Positions 2,670 to 50,217 of a stretch of DNA of 55,820 bases are shown in pieces. Source of the DNA: Macrostomum lignano (Eukaryota); NCBI GenBank assembly GCA_002269645.1, contig NIVC01002650.1, positions 1 through 55,820 on the forward strand, given 5' to 3'. The position numbers were made by a program, and so were the translations under genes. The notes beneath the pieces were generated by a model, which saw only the letters and a program-made list of their open reading frames with translations, was not told where the DNA came from and ran no database searches. Within the stretch, counting starts at the first letter, position 1; every line of letters starts with the position of its first letter.

Positions 2670-5560
2670 TCAGGCCTTCCCGACTGTTCTCTGCCGCGGC
2701 CCCGTGACTGAGGGCTCCGCTCCGATCGGCTCCGCCTCTGGCCTGCAAAAAAAACAAAATAAAAAACCTTACTTTTCTCGTTTCAAGTGAATGGCAATAA
2801 TAGAGAATATGTACTATAGACGCTACTTTCAATAGAAATAATTTTTTCGAGCTTAACTAAAATAATAATATTACACAGCAGTAGCAGCACACCTACTGAA
2901 GAGCACCGAGGGCAGCAGCACACCTACTGAAGAGCCCTGAGGGAAGCAGCACACCTACTGAAGAGCACCGAGGGCAGCAGCACACCTACTGAAGAGCCCT
3001 GAGGGAAGCAGCACACCTACTGAAGAGCACCGAGGGCAGCAGCACACCTACTGAAGAGCCCTGAGGGAAGCAGCACACCTACTGAAGAGCACCGAGGCAG
3101 CAGCACACCTACTGAAGAGCCCTGAGGGCAGCAGCACACCTACTGAAGAGCACGAGGGCAGCAGCACACCTACTGAAGAGCCCTGAGGGCAGCAGCACAC
3201 CTACTGAAGAGCACGAGGGCAGCAGCACACCTACTGAAGAGCCCTGAGGGCAGCAGCACACCTACTGAAGAGCACCGAGGGCAGCAGCACACCTACTGAA
3301 GAGCCCTGAGGGCAGCAGCACACCTACTGAAGAGCCCTGAGGGCAGCAGCACACCTACTGAAGAGCCCTGAGGGCAGCAGCAACCAGCATGGACCCACAC
3401 TCACTCATCGTCAGGCGCGTCCAAATCGACCAGTTCCGGCGGTTCATCGCTGTCGTCATAATAGTCAGCCTCCGCAGCTGCCGGCGCCGCATCATCGACA
3501 AGATCATCATCGTCATCTTCGTCATCCTCATCATCATAATCATAGTCATCGTCTCCGTCTGTTTTCTTTCGCCTAGCCCGAGCGGCGGCGGCGGCGGCCT
3601 TCGAACTTGGGGAGCTCTCGCGCAGACAGCAACAGTAAGCAATGAGTAGCACTAGCGGTAGTACAACTCCAACTAGCAGCGCCGCCCAAATCCACGGCTA
3701 TCGTTGGTGGCATCGCGCACCGCGTCAAAAACAGCCTGCAGAGCCGAGTCCTGTTGGCGCTCAGCCTGGCGCTTTATCGACCAAGTCTGATCGGCGAAGG
3801 AGTCGGCTAGCGGCTTGCGATCGACTATCAGCAAATTGTCAAATGCGACGCCTTCAGTCACGGACCAGAGCTCAAAGCCGATGGCACCAATGGGTGAAAA
3901 TTTCCAAGGCTGCTTGTCCACGAACCCATCCGCATTGGCAATCCGGCGGGGTCGCCAGGCGCCTCTGTAGGCCGGATTGTCCACCAATGGCGGAGTCCAC
4001 TGGCCACGGTACAGGGGATTCCTCACTTTCGGCCGAGTCCATGGCCCGCAGCCGGGCGCGTTTTGCACCTTGGAATTCAAAGTGTGAGTGGGTAGGGCAC
4101 TTTCTGATAGTTGAGAGGTAGAGGCGCCCCTGAAGTAGCTGAGGGTGTAGAGGGGCTCTCTGAAGTAGCTGAGGGTGTAGAGGTGCTCTCTGAAGTAGCT
4201 GAGGGGGTAGAGGTGCCCCCTGAAGTAGCTGAGGGTGTAGAGGGGCTCTCTGAAGTAGCTGAGGGTGTAGAGGTGCCCCCTGAAGTAGCTGAGGGTGTAG
4301 AGGTGCTCTCTGAAGTAGCTGAGGGGGTAGAGGTGCCCTCTGAAGTAGCTGAGGGTGTAGAGGTGCCCCCTGAAGCAGCTGAGGGTGTAGAGGTGCCCTC
4401 TGAAGTAGCTGAGGGTGTAGAGGTGCTCTCTGAAGTAGCTGAGGGGGTAGAGGTGCCCTAAAAGAGTAGCATGAAGAGCACGCATTCACCGGCCTCTCAC
4501 TTGGGATTTTCGATGTGCGCCGGCTGCCAGGCTCCGTCGATGTCGTCATCCCAGTCGGCCGGCTTTTTAGCCGTCGTGTCGGGCACGGTCGGCGGCTCGT
4601 CCAGCAGCCAGCCGGCCGGCACGCTGGCCTGGGCATCGTCGATGAACTCCGACTGCGACTCGTCCCAGTCGGCCGGCCGGACAGCTTTGGGATCTGGGAT
4701 TTTTTCTCGATCATCCCAATCGGCCGGCTTCTGGTCGGTGGAATCGTCCGCATCCGGCGGAGGATTCACTGGCGGCTGGAGGTCCTCCAGAAGGCTGCCA
4801 TTGTTAACTAGCACTTGATCGATATACACTTGGAAACTGTTGTCCGAGCTGACAACCAGAGTGTACAGGTGAGTTCGCTTGTCATTGAAGTAGGCGCTCA
4901 AATCTACTTGAGGCTTTCTGGCGTGTTTCTCTTCTACATTGCCGGTTGCTGGGCAGCGGTGGCGCAGTATAAAGTGCAGCTTGTGCTCCGGGCCGCATTT
5001 GTCAGGCCCGAACATGATAGTGTAGGCTGTCCTGTCAGTGAACTCTGTCAGGTTAAGGCTGGGACTGTCAGTCAGCAGTTTCAGATAGGCGCCGCCGCAC
5101 TCCATGCCGTGCTGGAATTTCACATCGTACTGCAGAACAAATTGCTTGTCGGCTGGTCGAACACAAATGGCCGGTCGAGCTTGGCCGAGATGGCGTAGTG
5201 CTTTGCTGGACTCTTCATCACGAGAGCGTAGTCGCCCTCGATGGCAGAGCTATCCGGCACCTCTACGGACCACTGGCCATCGTACTTGTCTGCCAGCTCA
5301 TCAGAGTCCTTCTTTGACTGGGACAGAACTAGACCATGGTCGGCTGGACTTCCTGGGCCGGGAAAATACTGCGCATAATATGCACCATCTGGTAGCTTTG
5401 GTGGAGCGAATCTTGGCTTGGAGCCTACTGCGGTGGCTGGAGTCGGCTGTCCACTAGCTTTAAAATTATCAGCCTTGTTGATTTTGGTTTCAGGCTTATG
5501 AGCATGCAGATGAGTACAGAACAAGTAGAGTAGTGCAATAATTGAGTTGTGCCACTTCAT
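2670..5560 (-). CDS. CANX: Calnexin (exons 5560-4501, 4068-3405, 2742-2670), with three apparent -1 frameshifts near 5151, 4062 and 3698
   Basis: Signal peptide MKWHNSIIALLYLFC. Lectin motifs YDVKFQHGMECGGAYLKL and IMFGPDKCG. P-domain repeats KPADWDD, NAPGCGPW and NPAYRGAWRPRRIAN, followed by IGFELWS. TM segment PWIWAALLVGVVLPLVLLIAYCCC, then an acidic tail ending GPRQRTVGKA*. GT-AG junctions are phase-consistent. Confidence 0.95.
2884..3381. repeat. 31-bp minisatellite (about 16 copies) filling calnexin intron 2
   Basis: Unit cagcacacctactgaagagc(acc/cct)gaggg(c/a)ag. Confidence 0.95.
4128..4460. repeat. 30-bp minisatellite (about 11 copies) filling calnexin intron 1
   Basis: Unit gaagtagctgagggtgtagaggtgccctct. 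It generates spurious repetitive ORFs. Confidence 0.95.
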
Positions 5561-10080: not shown

Positions 10081-16826
<6,746 letters not shown>

Positions 16827-17036: not shown

Positions 17037-17472
17037 GTATCCATGGCAACTATCTCTGTATCAATGGTAACAATCTGGTATCCGTGTAAAAAGAGAACAT
17101 TTCAACCGTAACCTACAGTCTCCGTAACCATGGTAACAGTCCTGTATCTCTGGTAACAAGCTTCATATCCATGGTAACAAGCTTCATATCCATGGTAACA
17201 AGCTTCATATCCATGGTAACAAGCTTCATATCCATGGTAACAAGCTTCATATCCATGGTAACAAGCTTCATATCCATGGTAACAGTCCCATCCCGATATC
17301 TATGGTTACAATCTCCGTAACCATGGTATCAGTCCCATCCCCATATCTATGGTTACAATCTCCGTAACCATGGTAGCAGTCCCATCCCGATATCTATGGT
17401 TACAATCTCCGTAACCATGGTAACAGTCCCATCCCCATATCCATGGTTACAATCTCCGTAACCATGGTAACA
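17037..17472. repeat. CCATGGTAAC-core tandem array (21-bp units, then about 48-bp units) 3' of SRP54
   Basis: ccatggtaacaagcttcatat about 6 times, then longer units containing gtaaccatggta(a/t/g)c. Confidence 0.85.
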
Positions 17473-18562
17473 GTTATTAGTCACCATTTTCCTAGTTGAT
17501 GTCAGTATTGTTACGAGAAGAACTCGTGAAAAGTTGTAATATCTGATTGCCTTGAAGCAGAATTTCTTACCCCAGTGGCTAAGATGAAAGAAATGAATTC
17601 TGAGTTCGTTTTGTTTTTTTGTTTAAACTTGCTTCATTGAATTTATTGAAAAGTGGCGTCCTGCTCTCTGTGTCATTTCCTCTTATCTGTGCCCTCCAGC
17701 GTCATTTGATATTGTGTTCTACTAGACTAACTGAACAGTTGCAGGTATTCTGTCTATCCGGAACGGATTTCCGTGGTGAATGGGTTTCGCGAGTCTGTTT
17801 AGAGTATGTATATGCATGTCAGAGAGCCAGCTCTCCGCTGCTTTGCCTATCGTATTTTATTACTTTTTTCATGTGTTTGCCTGCCTACTAATGTAACTGT
17901 AAATGGCTACTGTCAGTAGTGTAGCCGGCGTTCATTCTCTCCTATTTTCGCATACTTGACAATATATATTCATACTACAGAGCATGCCTTCATCAATTGA
18001 GTATGGATTAAGTTTTTTTATGGATTCTGTTAATTATAACTCTAATGTGCTTGTACTACTACTTTCTTGCTGTGCAAACTAAATAGCTTTGTAATCGAGT
18101 GAAATCAAAATTTAACTAATTGCATGGCATAACCATCCAGTTGAAATACTGGCGTGTTTCAATTGACACATTCCCGACACAGTTTCTCTCTGGTTGTGTC
18201 GCCTGTCAACCTGCAATCAATATTCTAGCTACGGTTCTCTGTCTGCTCAGCTTATCTAACTCGCTTTAATTGCCTGCTGGTAGAGATCTCTTGTGCTTTT
18301 CATGTTGGCTCACTAGCTGTCCCCCTGATAGAGAGACTTTTTGCCTTGCCCTGTCCGTGTATTTGTCCTGCTCTCTTGGCGTGATTCAATTATATAATAA
18401 ACTGATTGCTTCATTCTGTTGGCCCTAAAGATTTCTGCTGGATTCGTGGTTGGATAAATGAAAAATGTGATTCTAAGAAAGTGATATTTCTTGTGTTTAT
18501 ATATTTAGGCATTAAACATCCGGGCTCTGCAGCTTTTGACTGCCAGCCACAGTTTCACTGCG

Positions 18563-18998
18563 AACCTAAACCCTACCGCTAAATCCTAACCCTAACCTAA
18601 ACCCTACCCCTAACCTAAGCCCTACCCCTTAACCTAAACCCTACCCCTAACATAAATCCTAACCTAGACCCTACCCGCTAACCTAAATCCTACCAGTAAC
18701 CTAGACGCTACCCCTAACATAAATCCTAACCTAGACCCTACCCCCTAACCTAAATCCTAACTCTAACCTAAACCCTACCCCTAACCTAAGCCCTACCCCT
18801 TAACCTAAACCCTACCCCTAACATACATCCTAACCTAGACCCTACCCGCTAACCTAAATCCTACCAGTAACCTAGACCCTACCCCCTAACCTAAACCCTA
18901 CCCTCTAACCTAAACCCTACCCCCTAACCTAAACCCTAGTTCCTAACCTAAACCCTAATTCCTAACCTAAACCCTACCCCTAACCTAAACCCTACCCG
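18563..18998. repeat. Degenerate interstitial telomere-like array (CCCTAA-related)
   Basis: aacctaaaccctacccct, cctaaccctaacc and aaatcctaacc variants, with ordinary sequence on both sides. Confidence 0.8.
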
Positions 18999-21227: not shown

Positions 21228-23055
21228 CATTGGTGCCATTACAGTTGAGGTGGTGCCATTTTAGTTGAGGTGGTGCCATTTTAGTTGAGGTGGTGCCATT
21301 TTAGTTGAGGTGGTGCCATTTCAGTTGAGGTGGTGCCATTTCAGTTGAGGTGGTGCCATTTTAGTTGAGGTGGTGCCATTTCAGTTGAGGTGGTGCCATT
21401 ACAGTTGAGGTGGTGCCATTTTAGTTGAGGTGGTGCCATTTCAGTTGAGGTGGTGCCATTTCAGTTGAGGTGGTGCCATTTCAGTTGAGGTGGTGCCATT
21501 TCAGTTGAGGTGGTGCCATTTTAGTTGAGGTGGTGCCATTTTAGTTGAGGTGGTGCCATTTTAGTTGAGGTGGTGCCATTTCAGTTGAGGTGGTGCCATT
21601 ACAGTTGAGGTGGTGCCATTTTAGTTGAGGTGGTGCCATTTCAGTTGAGGTGGTGCCATTTCAGTTGAGGTGGTGCCATTACAGTTGAGGTGGTGCCATT
21701 TTAGTTGAGGTGGTGCCATTTCAGTTGAGGTGGTGCCATTTCAGTTGAGGTGGTGCCATTTCAGTTGAGGTGGTGCCATTTCAGTTGAGGTGGTGCCATT
21801 TCAGTTGAGGTGGTGCCATTTCAGTTGAGGTGGTGCCATTACAGTTGAGGTGGTGCCATTTTAGTTGAGGTGGTGCCATTTCAGTTGAGGTGGTGCCATT
21901 TCAGTTGAGGTGGTGCCATTTCAGTTGAGGTGGTGCCATTTCAGTTGAGGTGGTGCCATTTCAGTTAAGGTGGTGCCATTTCAGTTGAGGTGGTGCCATT
22001 TCAGTTGAGGTGGTGCCATTACAGTTGAGGTGGTGCCATTTTAGTTGAGGTGGTGCCATTTCAGTTGAGGTGGTGCCATTTCAGTTGAGGTGGTGCCATT
22101 TCAGTTGAGGTGGTGCCATTTCAGTTAAGGTGGTGCCATTTCAGTTGAGGTGGTGCCATTTCAGTTAAGGTGGCGCCATTTCAGTTAAGGTGGCGTCATT
22201 TCAGTTAAGGTGGCGCCATTTCAGTTGAGGTGGCGCCATTTCAGTTAAGGTGGCGTCATTTCAGATAAGGTGGCGCCATTTCAGTTAAGGTGGTGCCATT
22301 TCAGTTTGAGAGAGGCGCCATTTCAGTTAAGGTGGCGCCATTTCAGTTAAGGTGGTGCCATTTCAGTTAAGGTGGCGCCATTTTAATTGAGGTGGCGCCA
22401 TTTCAGTTAAGGTGGCGCTATTTCAGTTGAGGTGGCGCCATTTAAGTTGAGGTGGCGCCATTTCAGTTTGAGAGAGGCGCCATTTCAGTTAAGGTGGTGC
22501 CCTTTCAGTTAAGGTGGTGCCATTTCAGTTGAGGTGGTGCCATTTCAGTTGAGGTGGTGCCATTTCAGTTGAGGTGGTGCCATTTCAGTTGAGGTGGTGC
22601 CATTTCAGTTGAGGTGGTGCCCTTTCAGTTAAGGTGGCGCCATTTCAGTTGAGGTGGCGCCATTTCAGTTAAGGTGGTGCCATTTCAGTTGAGGTGGTGC
22701 CCTTTCAGTTAAGGTGGTGCCCTTTCAGTTAAGGTGGCGCCATTTCAGTTGAGGTGGCGCCATTTCAGTTAAGGTGGCGCTATTTCAGTTGAGGTGGCGC
22801 CATTTCAGTTAAGGTGGCGCTATTTCAGTTGAGGTGGCGCCATTTAAGTTGAGGTGGCGCCATTTCAGTTGATGGGGCGCCATTTCAGTTAAGGTGGTGC
22901 CATTTCAGTTAAGGTGGCGCCATTTCAGTTAAGGTGGCGCCATTTCAGTTAAGGTGGCGTCATTTCAGTTAAGGTGGCGTCATTTCAGTTAAGGTGGCGC
23001 CATTTCAGTTAAGGTGGCGCCATTTCAGTTTGAGAGAGGCGCCATTTCAGTTGAG
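21228..23055. repeat. 20-bp minisatellite (about 90 copies)
   Basis: Unit ttcagttgaggtggtgccat. Variants ttaagg and ggcgcc accumulate after about 22150. Confidence 0.97.
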
Positions 23056-23424
23056 GGGGGCGCCAGCACCAGAGGCACCAGCACCAGGGGCGCCAGCATC
23101 TCTAATAACTACCAATACTAAATAAGTTGGTAATAAAAAATCGCTTGAGTCGCTGCAATGGATTGAGCAACTGCTCATTAGTTAATAATTCCGAGCTGAT
23201 ATTTTTATTTAGTAGAGACAATTAACTTTTCAAAATGGTAAAATGTTTGTACACGCGCCATGCAGGGGGGACTGCAGTGTGGCTTCGAATTCTGGCTTTT
23301 AAAATAATGTTTTTTTATCGCAAGCAGCAGAACTTTTTCTCCTTGCTGTGGAGTCGCTGTGGGGCCACTACTTCAGCTGTGCTGAGTCTTTCAGACTGAA
23401 TACTGAGGCAAAACTGGGTGGCAT

Positions 23425-26008: not shown

Positions 26009-27951
26009 TGATGAGGACGCACTTTTATCCAAATTTCACGCTCGCACATGGGCTCCAAACTGGCTAGCCTACTAACAGCAGGCTATGGGCATTTTTCTCC
26101 TTTTTTGTAATTTTTCTAGAATTCATACTACTAGTAGGACTTTTGTAGCTATATGAATCTGCCATACTTGTAGTTATAATAACATAGGCGCGGTTTTTTG
26201 CTGCTTTTGGGGTCATAAATCATTGCTTTTGAGCTGGTCTGACAGCCACCTGCGCCTCACTCAATGCTGAGGCCACGGACTACTTAATTGTCGTTTATTA
26301 ATTGTCTACTTAAGTAGTCCGTGGCTGAGGCTGGCGCCAGATGGTCTGAGAGGATCGATGCGGGCGGTAGCTTTTTTCTCATCATTTTTGACAGGCCATC
26401 AGATTTATGAGATCAGGGCCTATTGTTCGTGTTCACTCAAGCGTTTGACAGCTTTGACAGCTATGCGTTTTACCCCTAAAAGTACTTTGGGATTAGCGAT
26501 TAGCGATTCCTCTTCACCATCTTCACTTTCTACTTAATAAGAGCTTTCTAATGCATATTTTTCATTAATTTTTGTCATTCCTACGCGAAAGGTCATAAAT
26601 CATTATGTAGCGATTTTGAGTGAGTTATGACTGCACCTGGCGTATTTTTATGGCCTTGAGGGAACTGATAGGATCTTCTGGTCACGTGAGTTTGGGTGGC
26701 AACAAGCTCAGCCAATCAGAAAATTCGACGTCAGTTATAACTCATAACCATAACTTATAGCTCAGCCAATCAGCGTCGAGGTGTTCCGTTATAACAAATT
26801 GCGGTCCAGTTGGCGGCTATTTAAACCGGTGTTTTTGGCCCGCCCGGACCTCAACCTCCTGGGACCTTGGCCTACTAACTTAGACCTCCCGGAGCTCGAC
26901 CGTCGTCTCTTGATCCCCGGATCGCAACTTCCCCCGTCACCATCAAGGACGAATTCCCCCGGTCGTCAGCAGCGAACATCAAGGTTAAGATAATCACCTG
27001 CTAGCTATCTGCGAAGATTGTGACATCAGCATCATCCCGGGTCTACAGCTGCGAAGCACTAAGCCGATTCGGTCACTGTGGATTACCTGGTCTCCGGCTG
27101 TTGAGTTTCTGATTGGTTTGGTGAGAGGCTACCTAGACTTGCTTGATTGGGTGATCCCTTATCTGTCCCCTATTTCAGTAGCTGGATTAGGCGCACACAT
27201 TTGCTCATCTTGTTCAGTAGTGCTGTTGCTGAGGCAGAAGTCATTCAATAATACTGCTAGTAGTCTGAAACTCCAATTCAATCTGAAGTGTGAAGGGATT
27301 TAGTGAGAAGGTTAAATCTGACAGTTATTTTATCGGTTTTATTTCTTTATTCGCCTATGGCTCAGATGAGTAGCTCGGGTAATGAATCATGCGGTCTCTG
27401 AAGTTCGAGGTAGTCTATCATCAGCGCTACGAGAGGCTGGTTGGCGCGTTGAAAGCCAAAAGTACAACTCCTCGTATTTAGCTATGTATAGTACATGTAA
27501 CTACCCCATAGTCTCGCCACTGCAAGAATCCCCTGCACAAGTCCCCTCTGTACCTGCATGGCCAATGCGATCTAGTCCCAGCAGTGTCCCTTAACATCGG
27601 CTATGACTTCGAGATAGACAGCAAAAAGACACTAGTTGGCAGGTGAGTGCTAAGCCCCCTCTAGTCGGAAGCCCGATTTCGAAAGTTCCGGTTTGGTGAG
27701 CCAGGACGCAGGGGCTGGTGGCAGCGGGTTAGTTAATCTGCGGATTAGCTAATCTCTACCTTCAAAATTCTCCCTGCTTGTCTCTCGCTGTCCCTCTCTT
27801 AGCTATAGGACCTAGGCTGCTCGCCACAGATCAAGCTACCATGGGGCTGACCATCTGACAGGAGTGGGGGGCCAGGACTCTAATTGATTTATTTCTGAGA
27901 CCTGAGGCCCGAAGGCTTCCACAAAGGAGCCGAAAAGGCCGAAACCCATCA
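26009..27951 (+). mobile_element. Solo LTR-like element A (about 1.94 kb)
   Basis: Termini TGATGAGGACGC...CCCATCA (TG..CA with a TGATG/CATCA inverted end). Flanks AGAT/ATAT form a 4-bp TSD with one mismatch. CCAAT boxes and TATTTAAA at 26.71-26.83 kb. Homologous to element B in the opposite orientation. Confidence 0.8.
26273..26324. mobile_element. 52-bp hairpin mini-insertion inside LTR A
   Basis: Perfect 15-bp inverted repeat ccacggactacttaa/ttaagtagtccgtgg, flanked by the direct repeat CTGAGG (26267-72 and 26325-30). Confidence 0.6.
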
Positions 27952-29247: not shown

Positions 29248-32200
29248 TGATGGGTTCGGCCTTTTTAAGCCTACAGCTTCGGGCCTCAGAACTCAGAAAT
29301 GAATCACTTAGAACTCTGGCCTCTCACTCCTGTCAGATGGTCAGCCCCATGGTAGCTAGACTGTGGGCGAGCAGCAAAGTCCTATAGCTAAGAGAAGACA
29401 GCGAGAGACAAGCAGGGAAAATTTGAAAGGTAGAGATTAGCTAATCCGCAGATTAACTAACCCGCTGCCACCAGTCCGTGCGTCCCGGCTCACCATACCG
29501 GAGCTATCGAAATCGGACTTCCGACTAGAGGGGAATTGAATTAACCTGCCATCTAGTGCCTTTTAGCTGTCTAAATCTCGAAGTCATAGCCGAATAGAAG
29601 GGACGCTGCTGGGACTAAGATCGCATTGGCCATGCAGGGACAGAGAGAACTTCTGCAGGGGGTTCTTGCGCTGGCGAGCCTCTATACACTACTAAATGTA
29701 CTATTTCAATACCAAATTCCCAGAAGTACATGTATCAGTACACGCAACTGCACGCTTTTGGCACTAAATGTGTTAACACGTCGACAGATAGGGATGATGT
29801 AGATGTATTTGTTACTTTTGGAGACCTTCTGACTAATATTTATCTCGTTCTAGCCGCTTAGCTGCCTGAGACCGCGCGAAGGCGCCAGTCTGGCACTTAA
29901 TTCGCATGCTTATCATGATTTCTGAGAACGACTGATTGACTGGGAACTGCGCCGCTTCCGGTCCACTGTGACCTCTGCCCCTAGATCTAGCCACTCATGT
30001 CAGCTGGTATTACGAAAAATAAAGAAAACATTAAGTCTTTAGCTTCCAGATTTAACTTTCTCACTTAATCCGCAATCCTAGACACTTTAGATTGAGTTAG
30101 AGCGAATGGCTACTTTTAATATTAACTGACACTTCTGCCTCGAGTTTGGCACACAAAAGCAAGTAAGCAAAAGTGCAAATCCTATCAGACTACCTAGGAA
30201 GGGGTCAGACAAAGGGCGCACCCAGTTGAGCAGGTCAAGAAAGCCTCACCAAACCAATCAGAGGACCTAACTGCCGGTAGCCAAGGAATCCACAGAGACC
30301 GCAGCGCTGTTGTCGTTGCCGGTTGTCGTTGCTGCTCTTAGATCACTGCCGGGAAATATCGATGATGCTTCTCAGGGGAACTTAGCTGCTGAAGCCGGAA
30401 CGGCCGGGGGAAGGGGGACCAGACGTCGAAGACGCAGCAGATGCCGAAGGGGCCGTCTAAGACAGGGGTTAGGACCGTGCAAGTGTAGAGTGTTCTACCT
30501 CCCGTAAAGAAGACATAAAAGTGTTAATGTACTACTCACACATTTTATTCAGTAGTAAGTCGAAGAGCATGAATAAAGGTATGCTTTGAATTATAAGTAT
30601 ATTCTGACTAACCAATAGAAAGAGAGAAATCTCGAGCATGCTAATTTTAGAAATCACCCAATCACGTGCGACCAACAACTGTCAATTCAAACCCACCTTC
30701 AAGTCATCATTTGGTTTGCACTCGGGTTGCACCCGGATGAACCAATCAAAGTCTACCAGCTACGGTAACCAATCATGCGCTTTTACAGTAGACTAGTTGC
30801 GCAACTTTCTACCCTGTCATGCTTGACAGCCACCGAATCGTGACCCTTTGACATTTGCGAAGACAGTGATGTACGACCTCGAGAGAGGTCTGAACGCCTA
30901 TAAATACAAGTGGTCCGGAACGGACTCAGAGCCAACAATTCCTCCGGAAGGAGAAGAGCTCCGAAGAGGAAGCCACTACAGGACTTCCTACAGAAGACTC
31001 GTCGAGTTCTTGCGGTAAGCCTTACTCATTTGCGCCTGTGTTTTGAGACGTCTCGTTGGAGTTTAGTTTGAGTCTGTTGAGACTCCTGAGTCTGTTTAGA
31101 CTCTACTGGTTGCAGTCTCCAGAAGGACTGCCCCTGATAGATCTTAGAAGACTATCAGTGGTTTCCGGAGCTATACCTAGAGTGCATAGAGGCACTGCTA
31201 GAAGGAGTAGGCTTATGTTAAACCGCAGTTTGGCGCAGGGTACCCATTGTTAATTTGGAAGCTTCTTATTGGTCCGAACGACAGATACCGGCCGGCAAAA
31301 GAAGAAAAGAGAAACTCGGACCAGGACTACAAGTCGAGTCGAATTCAGGCCTGAGCTACAGATCGAGATCTACACGAGATCTACGAAGGACTCAAAGAAG
31401 GAGAGATATCTCATAAGAAGTCAAGGTAATTGAATACCTTCGTTTGAATTACTGGGTTGCCTAGCTAAAGAGTTAGAATTGTGATTGTTCTTTGATTACC
31501 GAAGTCGGGTAATAAGGAACACATCACAAGAAGGGAGGTCCAAGCCGGCCTTTTCGAGCGCGGGTCGAGTTGCCGCCTTTTGTAGCTCTCATGCGGCCGA
31601 TTTGTTATAACGCGCGCCGAATTTTCTGATTGGCTGAGAGCTTTTGTTAAAATAGGCGCCGAATTTTCTGATTGGTCGAGCCGGGGGCAGTCAGGTCGAC
31701 TCTGGTTGGCTGAGCTCAAGACCCCAAAACCCACCCTACCAGGTGGCCTTCAGACCCCAGGGAAGATGACAGGTGCGGTCATAAATCATGCGCAAAACAT
31801 AATAAATGTCACTTGTCTAGACATCCTGGCGCCAAAAGTGACAGCAAAACACCCATAAATTAAAAGAAAAAGTAACAGAGCGAGTGGGGAGAAAGCTGGA
31901 AAGACCTCTTTGACCCAGACAGGCTGGAGCCAAAAGTGACAGCTAGACCGCCATAAATCAATGAAAACAGTGAAAAAGCCGCAAATCTGGGGTCAGAATG
32001 GGGTTGAAACCATTCCTTCCAGACTTAGTGTCGCCCGTCTAGACTGCTAGAGGTCAATCCGTCGTCTCAAACCCAGACAGTCTGACCTTCAAAGATGCGT
32101 AAACAATCCAAAATTAGAATCCTTAGAGAAGTACATTAAGTATTCATCATAATTAATAGTGATGGCATAAATTAGTGTTGAACTTAGCCTGGATGAGAGA

Positions 32201-35279: not shown

Positions 35280-38200
35280 CAGTAGAACTACCAAGGGGGG
35301 GGGGAAAATTTCCCCCCCCCTGACAATTTTTTTTGCTGCGCCGGAATGGAGCAATGCAGGCACACAAAATTCAAGAACACAGGCTAACTTTTTGTTGCGC
35401 ACCTTCTCAAACAAGAATCAAGTCGCCAACCCTCCGGACCGTTGAGATATTCGACGATTCTGCCAGAAGGTCGGATTTTTCCCATAAGCGCTAGTGTATT
35501 CAGTATACCCCTGTGCGCCAAATAGCACTGCGCCTCAGTGCAGCCTTGCCAAGTCTCCAAATTTCATCAGCACGTCGACCAAATGTGTCTGCATCAGCTC
35601 TGACTTCGTTGGTTACTGGCCTTCACCAAGACGGAGCTTCTAGACCTTCAACAGGTGGCACCAGGTGACTATGAACACCTTGATACGAATTTCTCTAGTT
35701 TCGCCGATCAAGCCTCGACAGTAGGCAAGCCTCAACTGCCAGACACCCTCAGCTAGTCTCCTGAGCATTCATTCCTTCATCATCCCGACACCGTCGGCAC
35801 CTTCAACAGGTGGCATCAGGTGACTATGGACGTCCTGTTGCAAATATGTCAGGTCTTTCTTATCAAGCTTCAATAATGGGCAAACCTCAACCGACGGACA
35901 TTGTCAGCTAGTCTCTCAAGCATTCCGTCATCATCCCGACGCCGTCGGCTCCTTCAACAGGTGACATCAGGTGACTATGGACGTCCTGTTGCAAATATGT
36001 CAGGTCTTTCTTATCAAGCTTCAATAATGGGCAAACCTCAACCGACGGACATTGTCAGCTAGTCTCTCAAGCATTCCGTCATCATCCCGACGCCGCCAGC
36101 TCCTTCAACAGATTACACCAGGTGACTATGAACACCTTGATGCGAATTTCTCAAGTTTCACCGATCAAGCCTCGACAGTGGGCAAGCCTCAACTGCTGGA
36201 CATTGTCAGCTAGTCTCTCAAGCATTCCGTCATCATCCCGACACCGTCGGCACCTTCAACAGGTGGCATCAGGTGACTATGGACGTCCTTTTGCAACTAT
36301 GTCAGGTCTTTCTTATCAAGCTTCAATAATGGGCAAACCTCAACCGACGGACATTGTCAGCTAGTCTCTCGAGCATTCCGTCATCACCCCGATGACGTCG
36401 GCACCTTCAACAAATGACACCAGGTGACTATGAACACCTTGATGCGAATTTCTCAAGTTTCACCGATCAAGCCTCGACAGTGGGCAAGCCTCAACTGCCA
36501 GACACCCTCAGCTAGTCTCTCAAGCCTTCCGTCATCATCCCGACGCCGTCGGCTCCTTCAACAGATTACACCAGGTGACTATGGACAGCCTGTTGCAAAT
36601 ATGTCAGGTTTTTCTTATCAAGCTTCAATAATGAGCAAACCTCAACTGCTGGACATCCTCAGCTAGTCAGTCAAGCATTCAGCCATCACCCCGACGCCGT
36701 CGGCACCTTCAACAGGTGGCACCAGGGGAGTAAGGACACCTGAGCGTGATTTTTCATCATGCTATTAACATTTCTAAATCATTAAAAAATGAAAAAACGG
36801 ATTGAATTTACTGGCTTCTTAAAAGCATAACCCTTTCTGCATAAAAATTGGGTTCAATATTATAGTTGAATAAACTAAACAGCTTTTCGAATAAAATATG
36901 TATGTAGCTCGTATGCATAAAAGTATGTGTAATAATAATATAAATATACAGCAACATGAGTTCAAGCTTAACTATAGCAATGTCCGTGCTTTAAAAATTT
37001 TGAGAGCTTCAGAAATGTTAAGAGCATGATGAAAAATCACGCTCACGTGTCCTTACTCCCCTGGTGCCACCTGTTGAAGGTGCCGACGGCGTCGGGGTGA
37101 TGGCTGAATGCTTGACTGACTAGCTGAGGATGTCCAGCAGTTGAGGTTTGCTCATTATTGAAGCTTGATAAGAAAAACCTGACATATTTGCAACAGGATG
37201 TCCATAGTCACCTGGTGTAATCTGTTGAAGGAGCCGACGGCGTCCGGTTGATGGCTGAATGCTTGACTGACTAGCTGAGGATGTCCAGCAGTTGATTTTT
37301 GCCCACTATCGAGGCTTGATCGGCGAAACTAGAGAAATTCTTATCAGGCTGTCCATAGTCACCTGGTGTAATCTGTTGAAGGAGCCGACGGCGTCGGGAT
37401 GATGGCTGAATGCTTGACTGACTAGCTGAGGATGTCCAGTAGTTGAGATTTGCTCATTATTGAAGCTTGATAAGAAAAACCTGACATATTTGCAACAGGC
37501 TGTCCATAGTCACCTGGTGTAATCTGTTGAAGGAGTCGACGGCGTCGGGATGATGACGGAAGGCTTGAGAGACTAGCTGACAATGTCCGTCGGTTGAGGT
37601 TTGCCCATTATTGAAGCTTGATAAGAAAGACCTGACATATTTGCAACAGGACGTCCATAGTCACCTGATGCCACCTGTTGAAGGAGCCGACGGCGTCGGG
37701 ATGATGACGGAATGCTTGAGAGACTAGCTGACAATGTCCGTCGGTTGAGGTTTGCCCATTATTGAAGCTTGAAAAGAAAGACCTGACATATTTGCAACAG
37801 GACGTCCATAGTCACCTGATGCCACCTGTTGAAGGTGCCGACGGTGTCGGGATGATGAAGGAATGAATGCTCAGGAGACTAGCTGAGGGTGTCTGGCAGT
37901 TGAGGCTTGCCTACTGTCGAGGCTTGATCGGCGAAACTAGAGAAATTCGCATCAAGGTGTTCATAGTCACCTGGTGCCACCTGTTGAAGGTCTAGAAGCT
38001 CCGTCTTGGTGAAGGCCAGTAACCAACGAAGTCAGAGCTGATGCAGACACATTTGGTCGACGTGCTGATGAAATTTGGAGACTTGGCAAGGCTGCACTGA
38101 GGCGCAGTGCTATTTGGCGCACAGGGGTATACTGAATACACTAGCGCTTATGGGAAAAATCCGACCTTCTGGCAGAATCGTCGAATATCTCGACGGTCCG

Positions 38201-39179: not shown

Positions 39180-39808
39180 CCAAGCATGCTCCTATTTATC
39201 ATGTCTCATACATGCACAACTGCTGGCCAATCTGGCCACCATTATTGTGGTGGACCAGAAGTAAGTTGCAGAAATCTCCATCCAAAGAATATGGAAGTAG
39301 TACTAATTAGAAGAAGAAGCATTTAGCCTTTGTTCTGGCCAGATAAGGGAAGGAGACAGGCGGAGGTTGGGGTGGCTGTCTCGATGACAAAAAAACAGAC
39401 TAACTTTAAAAGTGCATAGCGCCATTCAGAATTAAGTTTGAGACTCGAAATTGTACACGATTGTGTCAAAGTAATTGATTGTTTGTGTCAAATTTGAAGA
39501 GGATTGGTAAAAGTGAAGCAATGATATTGACGATTTAGTAAAAAAAACCTGTTTTGAGCAGTTTTTTGCACTTTTAGGTAAGTTTAAAGGTAGCCTAAGA
39601 TATTCTCCGTAGTGAGTTTAGGGTGGGTGCAAAATGTGGTGTAATTTGGTTGAGCGGTTTGGGAGTCCATAGCGAACAAATTTGTCCACAGACACAGAGT
39701 TTTCATTTTTATAGGTAGAGAAGCTAGTACAATGCTATGCTTTCAGTTCAATTTTTATAGATTATTACAATAGATTCTATACATAATTAGCTTTTGCCTA
39801 AAACTTTG

Positions 39809-42800
39809 ATGATACAGCTTAGTAACCAGACTACAGAGGGAGGAGCGTGTCTGCTCACTGCTGTGCAGGACTCACTGCGCAGGGCTGGCTGCAGTAATGG
39901 CTCAATCAGCGGCCCAAGCACCTCCCGAGTTCGAAACCCGCTGATTGGCCACCTGCTAGAGCAGCGGCTAGAGTTTGTTCCATCGCCTGGCAACTGGGAT
40001 GCTAAGGTGCTTGAGAAACTAAAACAGCTTGGCGCTACAATACTGACTACTGCAGCAGTTCCTGCTGTGCCGCCTGCTCAACTACTGAGCAGCAAAGATT
40101 GCCAGGCTGTTAGCGAGGCTCCTAAGAAGCTAGCACAGCCAGTGCAGAAGTCGGACGCCAAGAAGCCGCAGTTCAGTTTTGCTTCTGTGCAGCTCGACCG
40201 GCCCTACCATGGCCAGCCCTGCGGATTCGCCAACGAGGGCAACTATTGCTACATGATCTCAGTGCTGCAGGCGCTCATTCACACCGCTCCGTTTGTCAAC
40301 TTTGCCTGCGAGCACCGGACCGTATCGGCCTGTCGTCAGGTGGACAATCGCGGCCTGTTTAACCAGCATGGGCAACGGCAACATCCGGGACACCAGCAGC
40401 GGCAGCATCAGCCAGCTCGCTGGTGCGCAGTCTGCGAGCTGGCCGCCTATGCCCAGCGACCAAGTGGCAGCGGCGCCGTCTATCCTCGCGCATTCATGGC
40501 CAGAGTGACCACCGTGTCGCCAACTTTGCGCCCAAATCGGCAAGAGGACGCGCACGAATTCATGCGCTGCCTGCTAGACTATATGGAGCGCAATTGCGGC
40601 GGGGATAAGCGCCGATCAGCCGGCTCGCCAGCTGGTCCGATCCGGGTGCTGTTTGGCGGCCGGCTGAAGTCCTCGGTGCTGTGCACCAGGTGCGGCACAG
40701 AGTCGCGCACATTTGAAGACTTCATGGACCTCAGCCTGTGCATCCAGTACAGCTCCAGCCTGGCTGACTGTCTGCGCAAATTCGTGTCCCCGGATCTGCT
40801 CAAAGATTCCAACGCTTATAAATGCGAGAAATGCCGGACTAAAGTGACCGCTAAGAAAAGTTTCAGCATTGCGTCTGGCCCGCCAATATTAACAGTGCAG
40901 CTGAACCGATTCCAGTGGGGCCATAGCAACAAGATCAGCCGGTTCGTGCAGTTCCCCCTCAGCATCGATCTCAGGCCGTACATGTCCAAGCCTGGCCGCC
41001 CTGTGCACTACGAACTTTACGCGTTGGTTATTCACCAGGGCTCCAGCACCAAGTTCGGGCATTATTATTGTTACGCTAAACGCGGCAACGCCTGGTGGTC
41101 GTTAAATGATTCCTGCGTCGATCGAATCAACGAGTCGCGTGTACTGCAGTCTTGCCCCTATATTCTGCTGTACAAACGGACCGATTTGAGTCCCCTGATT
41201 GAGTCGTCCACCGTTGCTTCCGCTGCGGCTTCCAGTAACCTGTCTGTTGGAGACGCTAATTCTCTATCCTCGCCGGTTGCCATGGCGACTGGCGGCGTTA
41301 CTAAAAGCCAATCGCTTGTCAAGCCAAAACTGGAATCTGCCAACTCGGTTGCTATGGCAACAGGAAATGATTCATTTTCTCCAAAGCGCGCCAAGTACGA
41401 TCTCACACCCTCCAACTCGGTTGCCATGGTAACCGGCAACGGTCCTTCTGGTCTGTCACAGACGAAGAAACATCAGACATCTAGCTTGGTTGCCATGGTA
41501 ACCGGTAACGGTCCTGTAGGCCTGTCGCAGGCTAAGCACAAGCAGGCGCCCTCCAACTCGGTTGCCATGGTAACTGGCAATGGTCCTGTAGGCCTGTCGC
41601 AGGCTAAGCACAAGCAGGCGCCCTCTAACTCGCTTGCCATGGTAACTGGCAATGGTCCTGTAGGCCTGTCGCAGGCTAAGCACAAGCAGGCGCCCTCAAA
41701 TTCGGTTGCCATGGTAACCGGTAACGGTCCACAAAGCTTGTCGAGTACTATGTCGCAACCAAAACTTAGTAACGGGCCTCAAAGCCAAGCGCATGCCAAA
41801 CCCAGATCAGGATCTGCCAATGCGGTTGCCATGGTAACAGGCAACGGTCCGCTATCCCCAGGGCATACCAAACCAAAACCTACATCTGCTGCTGAGACAA
41901 CCGTCAACGGGCCGCTAAGCCTATCCAGCTCTAAGCCACAACCGATTCAGCAACTAGCTCACGGCACCAAAGTTGCCATGGCAGCAGCAGCAGCCGGCTG
42001 TCAGCAGATGCGAAACAAGCCTAACAAAGAGCTGCGCCAATTGATGTCTGCCAGTCCGCGGCGCCCCGACCCGCTTCCGTGGAGCGCTAATTCCTCGCCA
42101 CAGAAATCGGAGTCTCTGATTCCCAATGGTGTGTCCATTAACGGCAGGAAGCGGAAAGTCAGCGACAGTCAATCTTCGGCCAGTTCGTCCCTGTGCGATC
42201 AGGTTTGTCTGTTTATTTATTATTGGTAGACAAACAAACACTATTATAGCGTTATAGGCAATGTTGTGTATATGCTGGAAATAGAATATACCGATAGAAA
42301 TATGCCTTACCCACTTACTCAGTAAATTAGCTATCCGCGACCAACTTTGCTTTACCTTTGCATAAATGCCGTCGGTGATAACCCACTGGGCTAAGCAACC
42401 CCAATATATTGCCAATTACTATTAGTAGGAATGAAAAAAATGGACATTATGGAGGATTGGGAAATGTATTTAAAAATATTTCTAGGCTGGTATATATTTT
42501 TTTCTCCATGGAATATTACTAATGGCGAGATCTACTTACAGTACGGTTTGATCAAAGTTATTGTGGGGTTTTTTTAGCTATAGGTTTACTGTTGATTAGT
42601 AGCATATAATGTAAAAATTATAATTCAGAAATGTGATAAAAAATTCTCTTTGCAGCTGTCCGCCCAAAACCAATCTGAGCTGGACAACAAAAAGCGAAAG
42701 AAAAAAGAAGCCAAACGCAAGCTCAAACTGTTGAAGCTGCAGCAGAGCTCTGGCAGTGCTGCCAGTCTTGTGAATGGAATCGATTCAGTGGTGTGCAACG

Positions 42801-42814
42801 GGCACGTCGACTGA
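39809..42814 (+). CDS. Ubiquitin-specific protease, USP36/USP42-like (exons about 39809-42202 and 42656-42814; 5' end uncertain)
   Basis: Cys box GFANEGNYCYMISVLQAL, QEDAHEF, zinc-site CTRC and CEKC, His box YELYALVIHQGSSTKFGHYYCY, and WWSLNDS. A low-complexity tail is followed by a basic KKRKKKEAKRK final exon. Phase-0 intron CAG|gtttgt...ttgcag|CTG, and AATAAA at about 42909. Confidence 0.92.
41276..41985. promoter_or_regulatory. Cluster of nine RFX X-box-like palindromes inside the USP coding exon
   Basis: GTTGCCATGGCGAC at 41276, GTTGCTATGGCAAC at 41348, GTTGCCATGGTAAC at 41420, 41489, 41561, 41705 and 41825, CTTGCCATGGTAAC at 41633, and GTTGCCATGGCAGC at 41972. The motif match is direct; function is untested. 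Confidence 0.5.

Positions 42815-44911: not shown

Positions 44912-50217
<5,306 letters not shown>

Follow-up and report, generated by a model that had tools for sequence, protein, structure and literature searches.

Nine X-box-like palindromes in a USP36/42-like exon of Macrostomum lignano lie in a coding minisatellite that may be kept for its peptide

When a short DNA word is repeated many times inside a coding exon, is it the word or the peptide that is being kept? This question is raised by a locus of Macrostomum lignano (assembly GCA_002269645.1, contig NIVC01002650.1; the window, a complete contig, is the whole stretch of 55,820 nucleotides analysed here), where the initial annotation had described nine RFX X-box palindromes in a USP36/42-like exon and read them as dual-coded DNA. 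The answer towards which we lean is a different one, namely that the ladder is a lineage-specific coding minisatellite in which the peptide is selected and the X-box match was inherited from the codons of the founding unit.

The palindromes themselves, and their spacings, are exactly where they had been reported. Nine 14-mers with at most two mismatches to GTTGCCATGGYAAC start at 41276, 41348, 41420, 41489, 41561, 41633, 41705, 41825 and 41972, which places them 72, 72, 69, 72, 72, 72, 120 and 147 bp apart, all multiples of 3. The window holds 28 strand-matches to GTTGCCATGGYAAC, while shuffled versions of it yield 0.70 on average and never more than 4. All nine cores share one frame of the ORF at 39794..42229, and the peptide VAM[AV]T that had been assigned to every copy is found in seven, with unit 6 reading LAMVT and unit 9 VAMAA. 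The identification of the copies as RFX X-boxes also stands in part: under the fly consensus GYTRYYN1-3RRHRAC (PMC3414849), seven of the nine cores are full X-boxes on at least one strand, and six are the perfect palindrome GTTGCCATGGTAAC, but units 6 and 9 keep one half-site each. The cores and the two degenerate units between them are as follows.

41276 to 41289, unstranded: core 1, GTTGCCATGGCGAC, VAMAT; its wobble G sits where the consensus is degenerate
41348 to 41361, unstranded: core 2, GTTGCTATGGCAAC, VAMAT; the first base is A in locus copy L002, giving IAMAT
41420 to 41433, unstranded: core 3, GTTGCCATGGTAAC, VAMVT; followed by an overlapping zero-spacer site, GTAACCGGCAAC
41489 to 41502, unstranded: core 4, GTTGCCATGGTAAC
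41561 to 41574, unstranded: core 5, GTTGCCATGGTAAC; within the 144-bp block (41510-41653) missing from copy L002
41633 to 41646, unstranded: core 6, CTTGCCATGGTAAC, LAMVT; left half-site broken; within the block missing from L002
41705 to 41718, unstranded: core 7, GTTGCCATGGTAAC
41771 to 41824, plus strand: degenerate unit, NGPQSQAHAKPRSGSANA; NGP..K kept, VAMVT/X-box core lost
41825 to 41838, unstranded: core 8, GTTGCCATGGTAAC
41906 to 41971, plus strand: second degenerate unit, NGPLSLSSSKPQPIQQLAHGTK; core missing
41972 to 41985, unstranded: core 9, GTTGCCATGGCAGC, VAMAA; right half-site broken, flanks unrelated to the other units

An extended 18-bp palindrome, CGGTTGCCATGGTAACCG, was discarded as a conserved feature because it is found only where the Thr codon is ACC, in three of eight units.

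The ladder lies in translated sequence, as the initial annotation had proposed. The ORF runs continuously from the UCH domain through the repeat, and the GenBank CDS of BOX15_Mlig028393g1 (P0001, 100% identical), a gene model from the transcript-based annotation of M. lignano (PMC5730564), spans all nine cores. This CDS is partial at its 5' end and has a splice donor (CAG/GTTTGT) at 42203/42204.

39821 to 42203, plus strand: large coding exon of the USP36/42-like gene BOX15_Mlig028393g1, within an 811-codon ORF (39794..42229); P0001 maps from 39821
40220 to 41173, plus strand: UCH (USP) catalytic domain (Pfam PF00443, E = 2.3e-54, 185 bits, ORF residues 143-460)
41264 to 41985, plus strand: coding minisatellite, nine units around (N)SVAM[VA]TGNGP, basic period 72 bp (24 aa)
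42656 to 42814, plus strand: last coding exon of the USP gene, with a lysine-rich NLS-like tail and a TGA stop at its end

The best named protein matches are USP36 and USP42-like (29-38% identity), and the host gene is putatively assigned to this group by its UCH domain and closest similarity rather than by a phylogeny for orthology. An older M. lignano paralogue of the gene does not carry the repeat. The tail appears to be an orphan: an exhaustive HMMER search of 1.84 billion representative proteins gave no true homologue (P0124 to P0126 were rejected as spurious repeat matches), a protein search with the whole exon recovered only the M. lignano copies and the paralogue lacking the repeat, and a search with the tail on its own, a query swamped by low-complexity words, returned nothing.

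In its structure, the ladder is a coding minisatellite (VNTR), with head-to-tail units in multiples of three inside an ORF and a copy number that varies. TRF reports a tandem array at 41408-41730, the young centre of the ladder (period 72 bp, 4.5 copies, 86% matches), and units 4-6 share 86-98% identity outside the core; thus, the cores are not independent copies. Towards the edges the identity outside the core drops to 38-60% in units 1, 2, 7 and 8 and to 26-34% in unit 9, so the claim that the DNA between the outer copies has diverged beyond recognition holds for unit 9 but not for the other four. Nine units are present in the window and in two further assembled copies of the locus (L001 and L003), while L002 lacks 144 bp, corresponding to two units, and has seven. 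Copy L003 also shows an apparent 1-bp deletion. Since these four assembled copies are 97-99% identical and differ at only 15 sites over 2 kb, they have no power for a test of constraint on the core, where one substitution was seen and about 1.2 were expected. Tandem repeats are exceptionally abundant in M. lignano: 37 tandem arrays make up about 30% of the contig, and simple and tandem repeats account for 15% of the M. lignano genome (PMC5730564).

In the explanation that we prefer, a 72-bp (24-aa) repeat would have arisen in the orphan C-terminal tail of the M. lignano USP36/42-like deubiquitinase and grown by unit duplication. The conserved item would be the 11-residue peptide (N)SVAM[V/A]TGNGP, most likely acting as a repeated short binding or beta-strand motif, while the X-box match would follow from the codons in which the founding unit chanced to be written (GTT GCC ATG GYA AC), passed on to the copies through duplication and repeat turnover. 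The conserved block NSVAMVTGNGP outruns the 14-mer X-box, continuing through TGNGP, and this peptide is the only hydrophobic patch in each unit. At the Thr, Gly and Pro codons, positions 1 and 2 are largely conserved between units and position 3 is free to vary, which is a signature of peptide-level purifying selection. Moreover, the six changes seen in the core (GCC>GCT, GCA>GCG, V/A, V>L, V>I and T>A) are all synonymous or conservative in the peptide, and three of them wreck an X-box half-site. We infer that the peptide is what selection acts on, and its role may be structural: an AlphaFold model of the tail, built from the single sequence without an alignment, gives every VAM core a beta-strand (central units: pLDDT 65-87). 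These strands may be an artefact of repetition, and a Foldseek comparison of the tail model with the PDB gave nothing meaningful (E above 4).

One rival would keep the DNA as well. In this scenario, which we consider unlikely, the array would be a homotypic cluster of candidate sites for RFX, or for another palindrome-binding factor, serving as an exonic enhancer, a silencer or a sink, and selection on DNA and peptide together would hold GTT, GCC and GTA. Beyond the match of seven cores to the consensus, the codons bear on this idea, and the bases are as the initial annotation listed them: the first codon of the core is GTT in all eight units where it encodes Val and ends in T in 9/9, GCC is used in 8/9, and codon 3 ends in A in 8/9, while the Thr wobble reads T,A,C,C,T,T,C,A. 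However, fixation is not confined to the motif, because codon -1 is xCG in eight of the nine units and codon +7 is GnT in eight of the nine, the same degree of fixation. The three degenerate codons of the core have a pairwise wobble identity of 0.78, and seven conserved codons in the flanks one of 0.53; when the columns are permuted exactly, p = 0.16, with only three core sites and with paralogous units that are not independent, and a parsimony count of 2 synonymous events in the core versus 13 in the flanks gives a binomial p = 0.13. With the wobble excess not significant and xCG and GnT equally fixed, the argument that peptide selection alone would not fix these codons is not borne out by these comparisons.

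The substitutions can be read on both sides of the dual-use proposal. Both synonymous core changes hit degenerate positions of the X-box consensus, which therefore survives them; against this, unit 6 and, in copy L002, unit 2 have each lost the G at position 1 of the X-box, and unit 9 is short of one half-site. Two observations in this area go against the explanation that we prefer: it is a priori unlikely that a conserved peptide would be spelled as a perfect 14-bp RFX consensus, and the core wobble does trend towards higher conservation, with synonymous changes that spare the consensus. As for the circumstances that the initial annotation had itself named as able to undo its reading, three or four of the nine copies are recent duplicates, and a further copy of the locus has seven units instead of nine. 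An argument from rare codons was dropped: GTT (16%) and GTA (9%) are rare in the coding sequence of the window taken together, yet they are not rare in the tail, where GC3 is 0.56 versus 0.70 in the catalytic domain. Conservation of the DNA motif rather than of the peptide is thus not established, and overall we cannot tell whether the dual-coding interpretation is right.

The position of the cores is also relevant here. Known functional X-boxes usually occur singly or in pairs, in the roughly 500 bp that precede the start of a ciliary gene (PMC4168999). The M. lignano cores are found within a gene body, about 1.5-2.2 kb in (1.46-2.16 kb past the first codon of the annotated USP CDS), with the start codon of the STAT-like gene 2.9 kb further downstream, and this counts against the dual-use proposal. 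So does the neighbourhood: no ciliary or RFX-programme gene is found among the genes identified in the contig, which are SRP54, a trypsin-like protease, the USP36/42-like gene and the STAT-like gene by searches, and a calreticulin-like gene and a GPCR-like ORF by reading of ORF translations only. On the other side, exonic enhancers are an established class (PMC3371700, PMC13216554), and a STAT gene about 3 kb downstream had been suggested as a possible target. A STAT-like gene is indeed present, with its CDS starting at 44912, 2.9 kb from the ladder, although its Pfam STAT_int and STAT_bind matches are below the cut-off. The USP and STAT-like genes are numbered as one transcriptional unit (g1 and g2 of Mlig028393), and there is a 1660-aa model in which they are fused, which fits the polycistronic, trans-spliced units described for M. 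lignano (PMC5730564). Because the two genes are apparently part of one transcriptional unit, the idea of an exonic enhancer acting on STAT is weakened.

A role of the repeat in the RNA was given very little weight. The mRNA could form duplexes between the palindromes of different units, or translation could begin internally at the nine in-frame GCCATGG codons. The array folds better than shuffled sequences (z = -3.1), with cores pairing across units, and the ATG of each core has G at -3 and +4, as read directly from the sequence. However, such folding is expected of any repeated palindrome, a search of the window against Rfam gave no match, and internal initiation would yield only fragments of the tail, without the catalytic domain. 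Both the internal Kozak-type ATGs and the long-range mRNA duplexes were set aside as unsupported. Antisense coding over the array was likewise rejected: since the minus-strand ORFs are split into three pieces in two frames, they were treated as a by-product of the palindrome.

The same contig carries a second array, 24 kb upstream of the coding ladder, that shares the CCATGGTAAC core.

17037 to 17474, plus strand: minisatellite in non-coding DNA (unit lengths 21, 26 and 47 bp), 211 bp past the stop codon of SRP54

It contains nine copies of CCATGGTAAC and three of GTAACCATGGTAAC, and in the other copy of this locus (L005, located with a trypsin query that returned one M. lignano locus) it has grown to 18 copies of CCATGGTAAC. 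The two arrays are possibly related. Their local alignment scores 30, when 116 control windows have a mean of 20.4 (sd 2.4) and a maximum of 27, and the similarity extends beyond the 10-mer CCATGGTAAC to GTAACC(AT)GGTAAC[A/G]GTCCTGTA, in one non-coding unit and over a short alignment. The non-coding array keeps alive the possibility of a DNA-level role for the X-box-like core, as the dual-use proposal would have it, but in the 47-bp repeat of the window's copy of this array the right half-site is mutated in two of three 26-bp GTAACC units. A non-coding array sharing CCATGGTAAC and GTCCTGTA in the same contig is something that the peptide account does not predict.

The coding repeat and the array at 17.0-17.5 kb could instead descend from a single X-box-like minisatellite family, the core being kept mainly by repeat turnover and concerted evolution with the help of the palindrome, and not by selection for the peptide or for the binding of a factor; either the ORF of the tail took in a minisatellite, or the non-coding array grew from a piece of the exon. 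We regard this as doubtful. In addition to the alignment score, copy number varies in both arrays (seven or nine units in the coding one, 9 or 18 cores in the non-coding one), the USP tail is an orphan and minisatellites saturate the genome. Nevertheless, the extended similarity hangs on that single unit and short alignment, and the greater conservation of positions 1 and 2 over position 3 in the Thr, Gly and Pro codons argues for real constraint on the peptide after the repeat came into being. No X-box and no further member of the family turned up in unrelated sequence from M. lignano (L004, about 24 kb), and a look-up of a possible repeat-element ORF found nothing. More improbable still, we think, is the bolder version in which M. 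lignano has an X-box minisatellite family made up of polymorphic arrays of RFX-type sites, one of which was captured by, or born in, the frame of the deubiquitinase tail, with the same 14 bp retained in two roles, as an array of factor sites and as the core of a new peptide repeat.

For the reading that we prefer, the coding minisatellite, the locus is a tidy case of a coding tandem repeat mimicking a cluster of regulatory motifs. It also carries a general lesson, as codon identity among paralogous units is no evidence of synonymous constraint unless it is set against neighbouring conserved codons and corrected for recent duplication. Should the DNA-level reading be true, this would be an unusually clean case of dual coding, with nine occurrences of the site of one known factor in a gene-body exon, in an animal amenable to transgenesis, and it would connect the dynamics of minisatellites with the origin of a new protein motif. 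Should the capture version be true, a protein repeat would have been made from, and would still be constrained by, a VNTR of transcription-factor sites.

How does this locus compare with known systems? Like the USP36 and USP42 deubiquitinases, the M. lignano protein has a UCH catalytic domain and a basic NLS-like C-terminus; in contrast, its repeat-bearing tail has no counterpart in the protein libraries searched. Coding minisatellites (VNTRs) are known in disordered protein tails, for example in mucin-type repeat exons, and the ladder resembles them in its head-to-tail multiple-of-three units, its young centre and decayed edges and its copy-number differences. It departs from them in having as its core a perfect palindrome that fits a transcription-factor consensus, and in residing in a USP36/42-like enzyme that has a repeat-free paralogue. 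Non-coding VNTRs can act as arrays of factor sites, as in the insulin VNTR and the GGAA microsatellites bound by EWS-FLI1; similarly, each unit of the polymorphic minisatellite at 17037-17474 holds a candidate factor site, although half of its units (ATATCYATGGTTAC) do not fit the X-box consensus. The RFX X-box (GTTGCCATGGCAAC, with the half-site RGYAAC; PMC3414849, PMC4168999) has complete sequence identity in the M. lignano cores, but known sites lie upstream of ciliary genes and are conserved across species, whereas here nine copies sit in frame in a deubiquitinase exon. Exonic enhancers (eExons; PMC3371700, PMC4207465, PMC13216554) are defined by chromatin marks, occupancy or reporter activity. 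As in that class, the M. lignano exon is translated and carries candidate transcription-factor motifs; one motif laddered in step with a peptide repeat would be an unusual architecture for them.

The X-box ladder is real and was accurately described: all nine 14-mers lie between 41276 and 41985 at the positions and spacings given in the initial annotation, whose list of the wobble bases within them also agrees with the sequence, and 28 strand-matches to the motif were observed against a mean of 0.7 in shuffles. By the published consensus forms (GTTGCCATGGCAAC and GYTRYYN1-3RRHRAC, with the half-site RGYAAC; PMC3414849, PMC4168999), seven of the nine cores are full X-boxes and the other two have one half-site left, and in several units a zero-spacer second site, GTAACCGGYAAC, overlaps the 3' side of the core. 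The encoded peptide is VAM[A/V]T, as had been proposed for all copies, in units 1-5, 7 and 8, but unit 6 reads LAMVT and unit 9 VAMAA. Because the core is a palindrome, V-T-M-A-T is readable in antisense at every unit (window 41158-41712, minus strand), where three ORFs of 75-93 aa occur; since these are three pieces in two frames and look like a by-product, we rejected an antisense gene across the array.

The protein across the ladder is PAA56227.1 (BOX15_Mlig028393g1, 100% identity), its closest named relatives being USP36 and USP42-like proteins. Its gene is laid out as follows:

39794..42229: single open frame of 811 codons holding the ladder
N-terminal two thirds of this frame: UCH/USP catalytic domain (PF00443, E = 2.3e-54)
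39821 to 42203: large exon of the annotated USP CDS, with splice donor CAG/GT
42656-42814: final USP exon, short and lysine-rich

The exon status of the ladder is supported, since the GenBank gene models of this assembly derive from a genome-guided RNA-seq transcriptome (PMC5730564) and about 340 codons downstream of the UCH domain contain no stop. A search of 1.84 billion representative proteins found no homologue of the tail that carries the repeat, and an older M. lignano paralogue with a 63% identical catalytic domain has an unrelated tail. This paralogue (Mlig003458, L004 1-8697) adjoins an SRP72 gene, and SRP54 lies upstream of the USP in the window; that both neighbours are signal-recognition-particle subunits is probably a coincidence. 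AlphaFold2, run on the tail as a single sequence, gives a model of low overall confidence (mean pLDDT 52) with no structural match in the PDB; it places a beta-strand at each (N)SVAM[V/A]T core and another, short one past GNGP, with block pLDDT of 65-87 in the central repeats, although perfect repeats can yield artefactual models. The model hints faintly at a structural or binding role of the hydrophobic VAMV patch.

TRF finds a 72-bp period across 41408-41730, and codon by codon the 24-residue unit reads (P)SNS-VAM[V/A]T-GNGP-x-x-LSQ-x-K-x-K. Outside the core, units 4-6 are 86-98% identical, units 3, 7 and 8 share 50-74% with other units, and units 1 and 2 share 38-60%. The suggestion that the flanks have diverged beyond recognition therefore holds for unit 9 (26-34%, the random level) but not for units 1 and 2. 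Two further units have decayed:

41771-41824: decayed unit, NGP...K kept, VAMVT core gone
41906-41971: decayed unit, NGP...K kept, VAMVT core gone

The whole USP locus occurs in three further assembly copies that are 97-99% identical, which fits the report of 180 Mb in duplicated blocks (>=95% identity) for this M. lignano line (PMC5730564). In one of them (L002) exactly two units, 144 bp in all, are missing (window-equivalent 41510-41653), which leaves seven copies instead of nine. From its tandem units, this copy-number difference, the orphan tail and the unrelated tail of the paralogue, the ladder reads as a young, lineage-specific coding minisatellite. Another copy (L003) has a 1-bp deletion in a C run inside the repeat (equivalent of window 41621) that shifts the frame, and the protein annotated for it (P0118) leaves out two units; the assembly may be wrong here, or the copy damaged. 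The array RNA is more stably folded than shuffled sequence (z = -3.1) through pairing of cores in different units, which is expected of any repeated palindrome, and no Rfam family was found in the window.

Repeats are common in the window, a complete 55,820-bp contig of the free-living flatworm M. lignano (GCA_002269645.1), with 37 tandem arrays (23 of them >=200 bp) covering about 30% of it. Most have 18-48-bp units and lie inside SRP54 and STAT-like introns. Examples of intronic and other arrays, and further repeats, are:

10439-11952, 14595-15985, 21231-23056 and 46728-47512: tandem arrays
18565-18997: interstitial degenerate telomere-like repeats (CCCTAA / CCTAAA variants), about 430 bp
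27510-27792 and 29397-29681: nested inverted repeats (arms 137, 99, 64 and 43 nt) enclosing about 1.6 kb with homopolymer runs of G and C, recurring GGGTGGTCACCC palindromes and an ORF of 202 aa with no gene on record; may be a non-autonomous transposable element
35435-36587 and 37048-38200: inverted repeat located some 1.6 kb before the USP coding exon, its 1.15-kb arms 90% complementary, 460 bp apart and made of 151-bp tandem units
45991-46094 and 48005-48382: (ACAG)26 and perfect (GACT)94 microsatellites, respectively, inside the STAT-like gene

The initial annotation took the ladder as dual-coded, the exonic DNA also serving as candidate RFX sites, and argued that peptide selection alone would not fix the codons. 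Three or more of the nine copies arose by recent duplication, which makes their identical codons uninformative, and the wobble comparison took in six independent lineages (units 1, 2, 3, 4, 7 and 8). Pairwise wobble identity averages 0.78 at the three degenerate core codons (1.00, 0.67, 0.67) and 0.53 at seven flanking conserved codons (0.27, 1.00, 0.27, 0.27, 0.67, 1.00, 0.27). This trend has the predicted direction, but the excess is not significant by exact permutation over columns (p = 0.16, 3 versus 7 columns) and by parsimony on the unit tree (2 synonymous events in three core columns versus 13 in seven flanking ones, binomial p = 0.13). Moreover, two wobble bases beyond the X-box are fixed as strongly as those of the core: codon -1 is xCG in 8/9 units despite its changing amino acid (P, S, L, A), and codon +7 is GnT in 8/9 (G, V, D). 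The argument that peptide selection would not suffice is not supported by these comparisons. GTT (16%) and GTA (9%) are minor codons in the window's overall coding sequence; codon bias is weaker in the tail (GC3 0.56 versus 0.70 in the catalytic domain), where GTT and GTA are as frequent as GTC and GTG.

The conserved block, NSVAMVTGNGP, spans 33 bp. At its Thr, Gly and Pro codons positions 1-2 are largely conserved among units and position 3 is free to vary, a textbook mark of peptide-level purifying selection. Since this mark extends to conserved residues for which the X-box gives no reason, selection on the peptide has to be assumed either way, and selection on the DNA would be an extra hypothesis on top of it. 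Six changes occur within the 14-mer among units and locus copies:

G1>C: V>L, unit 6, breaks a half-site
G1>A: V>I, unit 2 of L002 (equivalent of window 41348), breaks a half-site
C6>T: synonymous
T11/C11: V/A
A12>G: synonymous
A13>G: T>A, breaks a half-site

Each of these changes is either synonymous or conservative at the peptide level, and three destroy a half-site, which speaks against dual coding; both synonymous changes fall at degenerate positions of the X-box consensus, which speaks for it. On these few data there may be some DNA-level constraint on the core, but the tests run do not support dual coding, which we consider unlikely.

The setting also argues against it. Functional X-boxes have been described as single or paired sites within the few hundred bp that precede ciliary genes (PMC4168999, PMC3414849), whereas the ladder sites sit 1.5-2.2 kb inside a gene body and none of the genes identified on the contig is ciliary (SRP54, a trypsin-like protease, USP, a STAT-like SH2 protein and, from ORF translations only, a calreticulin-like gene and a GPCR-like ORF). 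The STAT gene, one of the two targets proposed, is where it was said to be, about 3 kb downstream, its CDS beginning 2.9 kb away; we call it STAT-like, as its Pfam STAT hits fall under the curated cut-off.

39821-42814: USP gene
44912-50217: STAT-like gene

The two genes are numbered as one transcriptional unit (Mlig028393 g1 and g2), and a fused protein model of 1660 aa (P0123) joins USP and STAT, which suggests one polycistronic, trans-spliced unit of the kind described for M. lignano (PMC5730564). If so, judging from the naming and the fused model, the STAT-like gene would have no separate promoter through which an enhancer could work.

One result is unforeseen by a peptide-only explanation, namely a second array:

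17037-17474: non-coding minisatellite 211 bp past the SRP54 stop codon, units of 21, 26 and 47 bp

Every unit is built on ATGGTAAC or ATGGTTAC, and CCATGGTAAC occurs nine times, GTAACCATGGTAAC three times and GTATCCATGGCAAC once; at a duplicated locus (L005, reverse complement, about 2718-3590) the array has grown to 18 copies of CCATGGTAAC. It may lie within the SRP54 3' UTR, since no AATAAA occurs between it and about 18396. The likeness extends beyond the core (coding GTAACC--GGTAACGGTCCTGTA, non-coding GTAACCATGGTAACAGTCCTGTA), with a local alignment score of 30 against a mean of 20.4 (sd 2.4, maximum 27) in 116 control windows, or about p = 0.004 by Gumbel fit. The minisatellites of the window together comprise about 1.2 kb of unique unit sequence, from which we estimate a chance of roughly 0.002 that one of them holds the shared 10-mer. 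The likeness could reflect a shared origin, a shared DNA-level function or coincidence. Non-coding units of the ATATCYATGGTTAC type, half of the total, do not match the X-box, and the 47-bp repeat of the window copy has mutated right half-sites (GGTATC, GGTAGC) in two of its three 26-bp GTAACC units, which argues against strong constraint. No further X-boxes were found in the remaining window, the flanks of the duplicated loci or the 24-kb paralogue locus. Under a shared origin, the minisatellite would have been captured into frame, or an exon fragment would have seeded the non-coding array; we regard this as an unlikely but live alternative, about as probable as dual coding.

The most economical explanation, and one that we favor with modest confidence, is that a lineage-specific coding VNTR would have arisen in the USP tail, its conserved peptide core being an X-box palindrome through the codons of the founding unit. 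Should dual coding prove true instead, the element would belong to a known class, the exonic enhancers (PMC3371700, PMC13216554), from which it would differ in its unusual homotypic, repeat-borne architecture.
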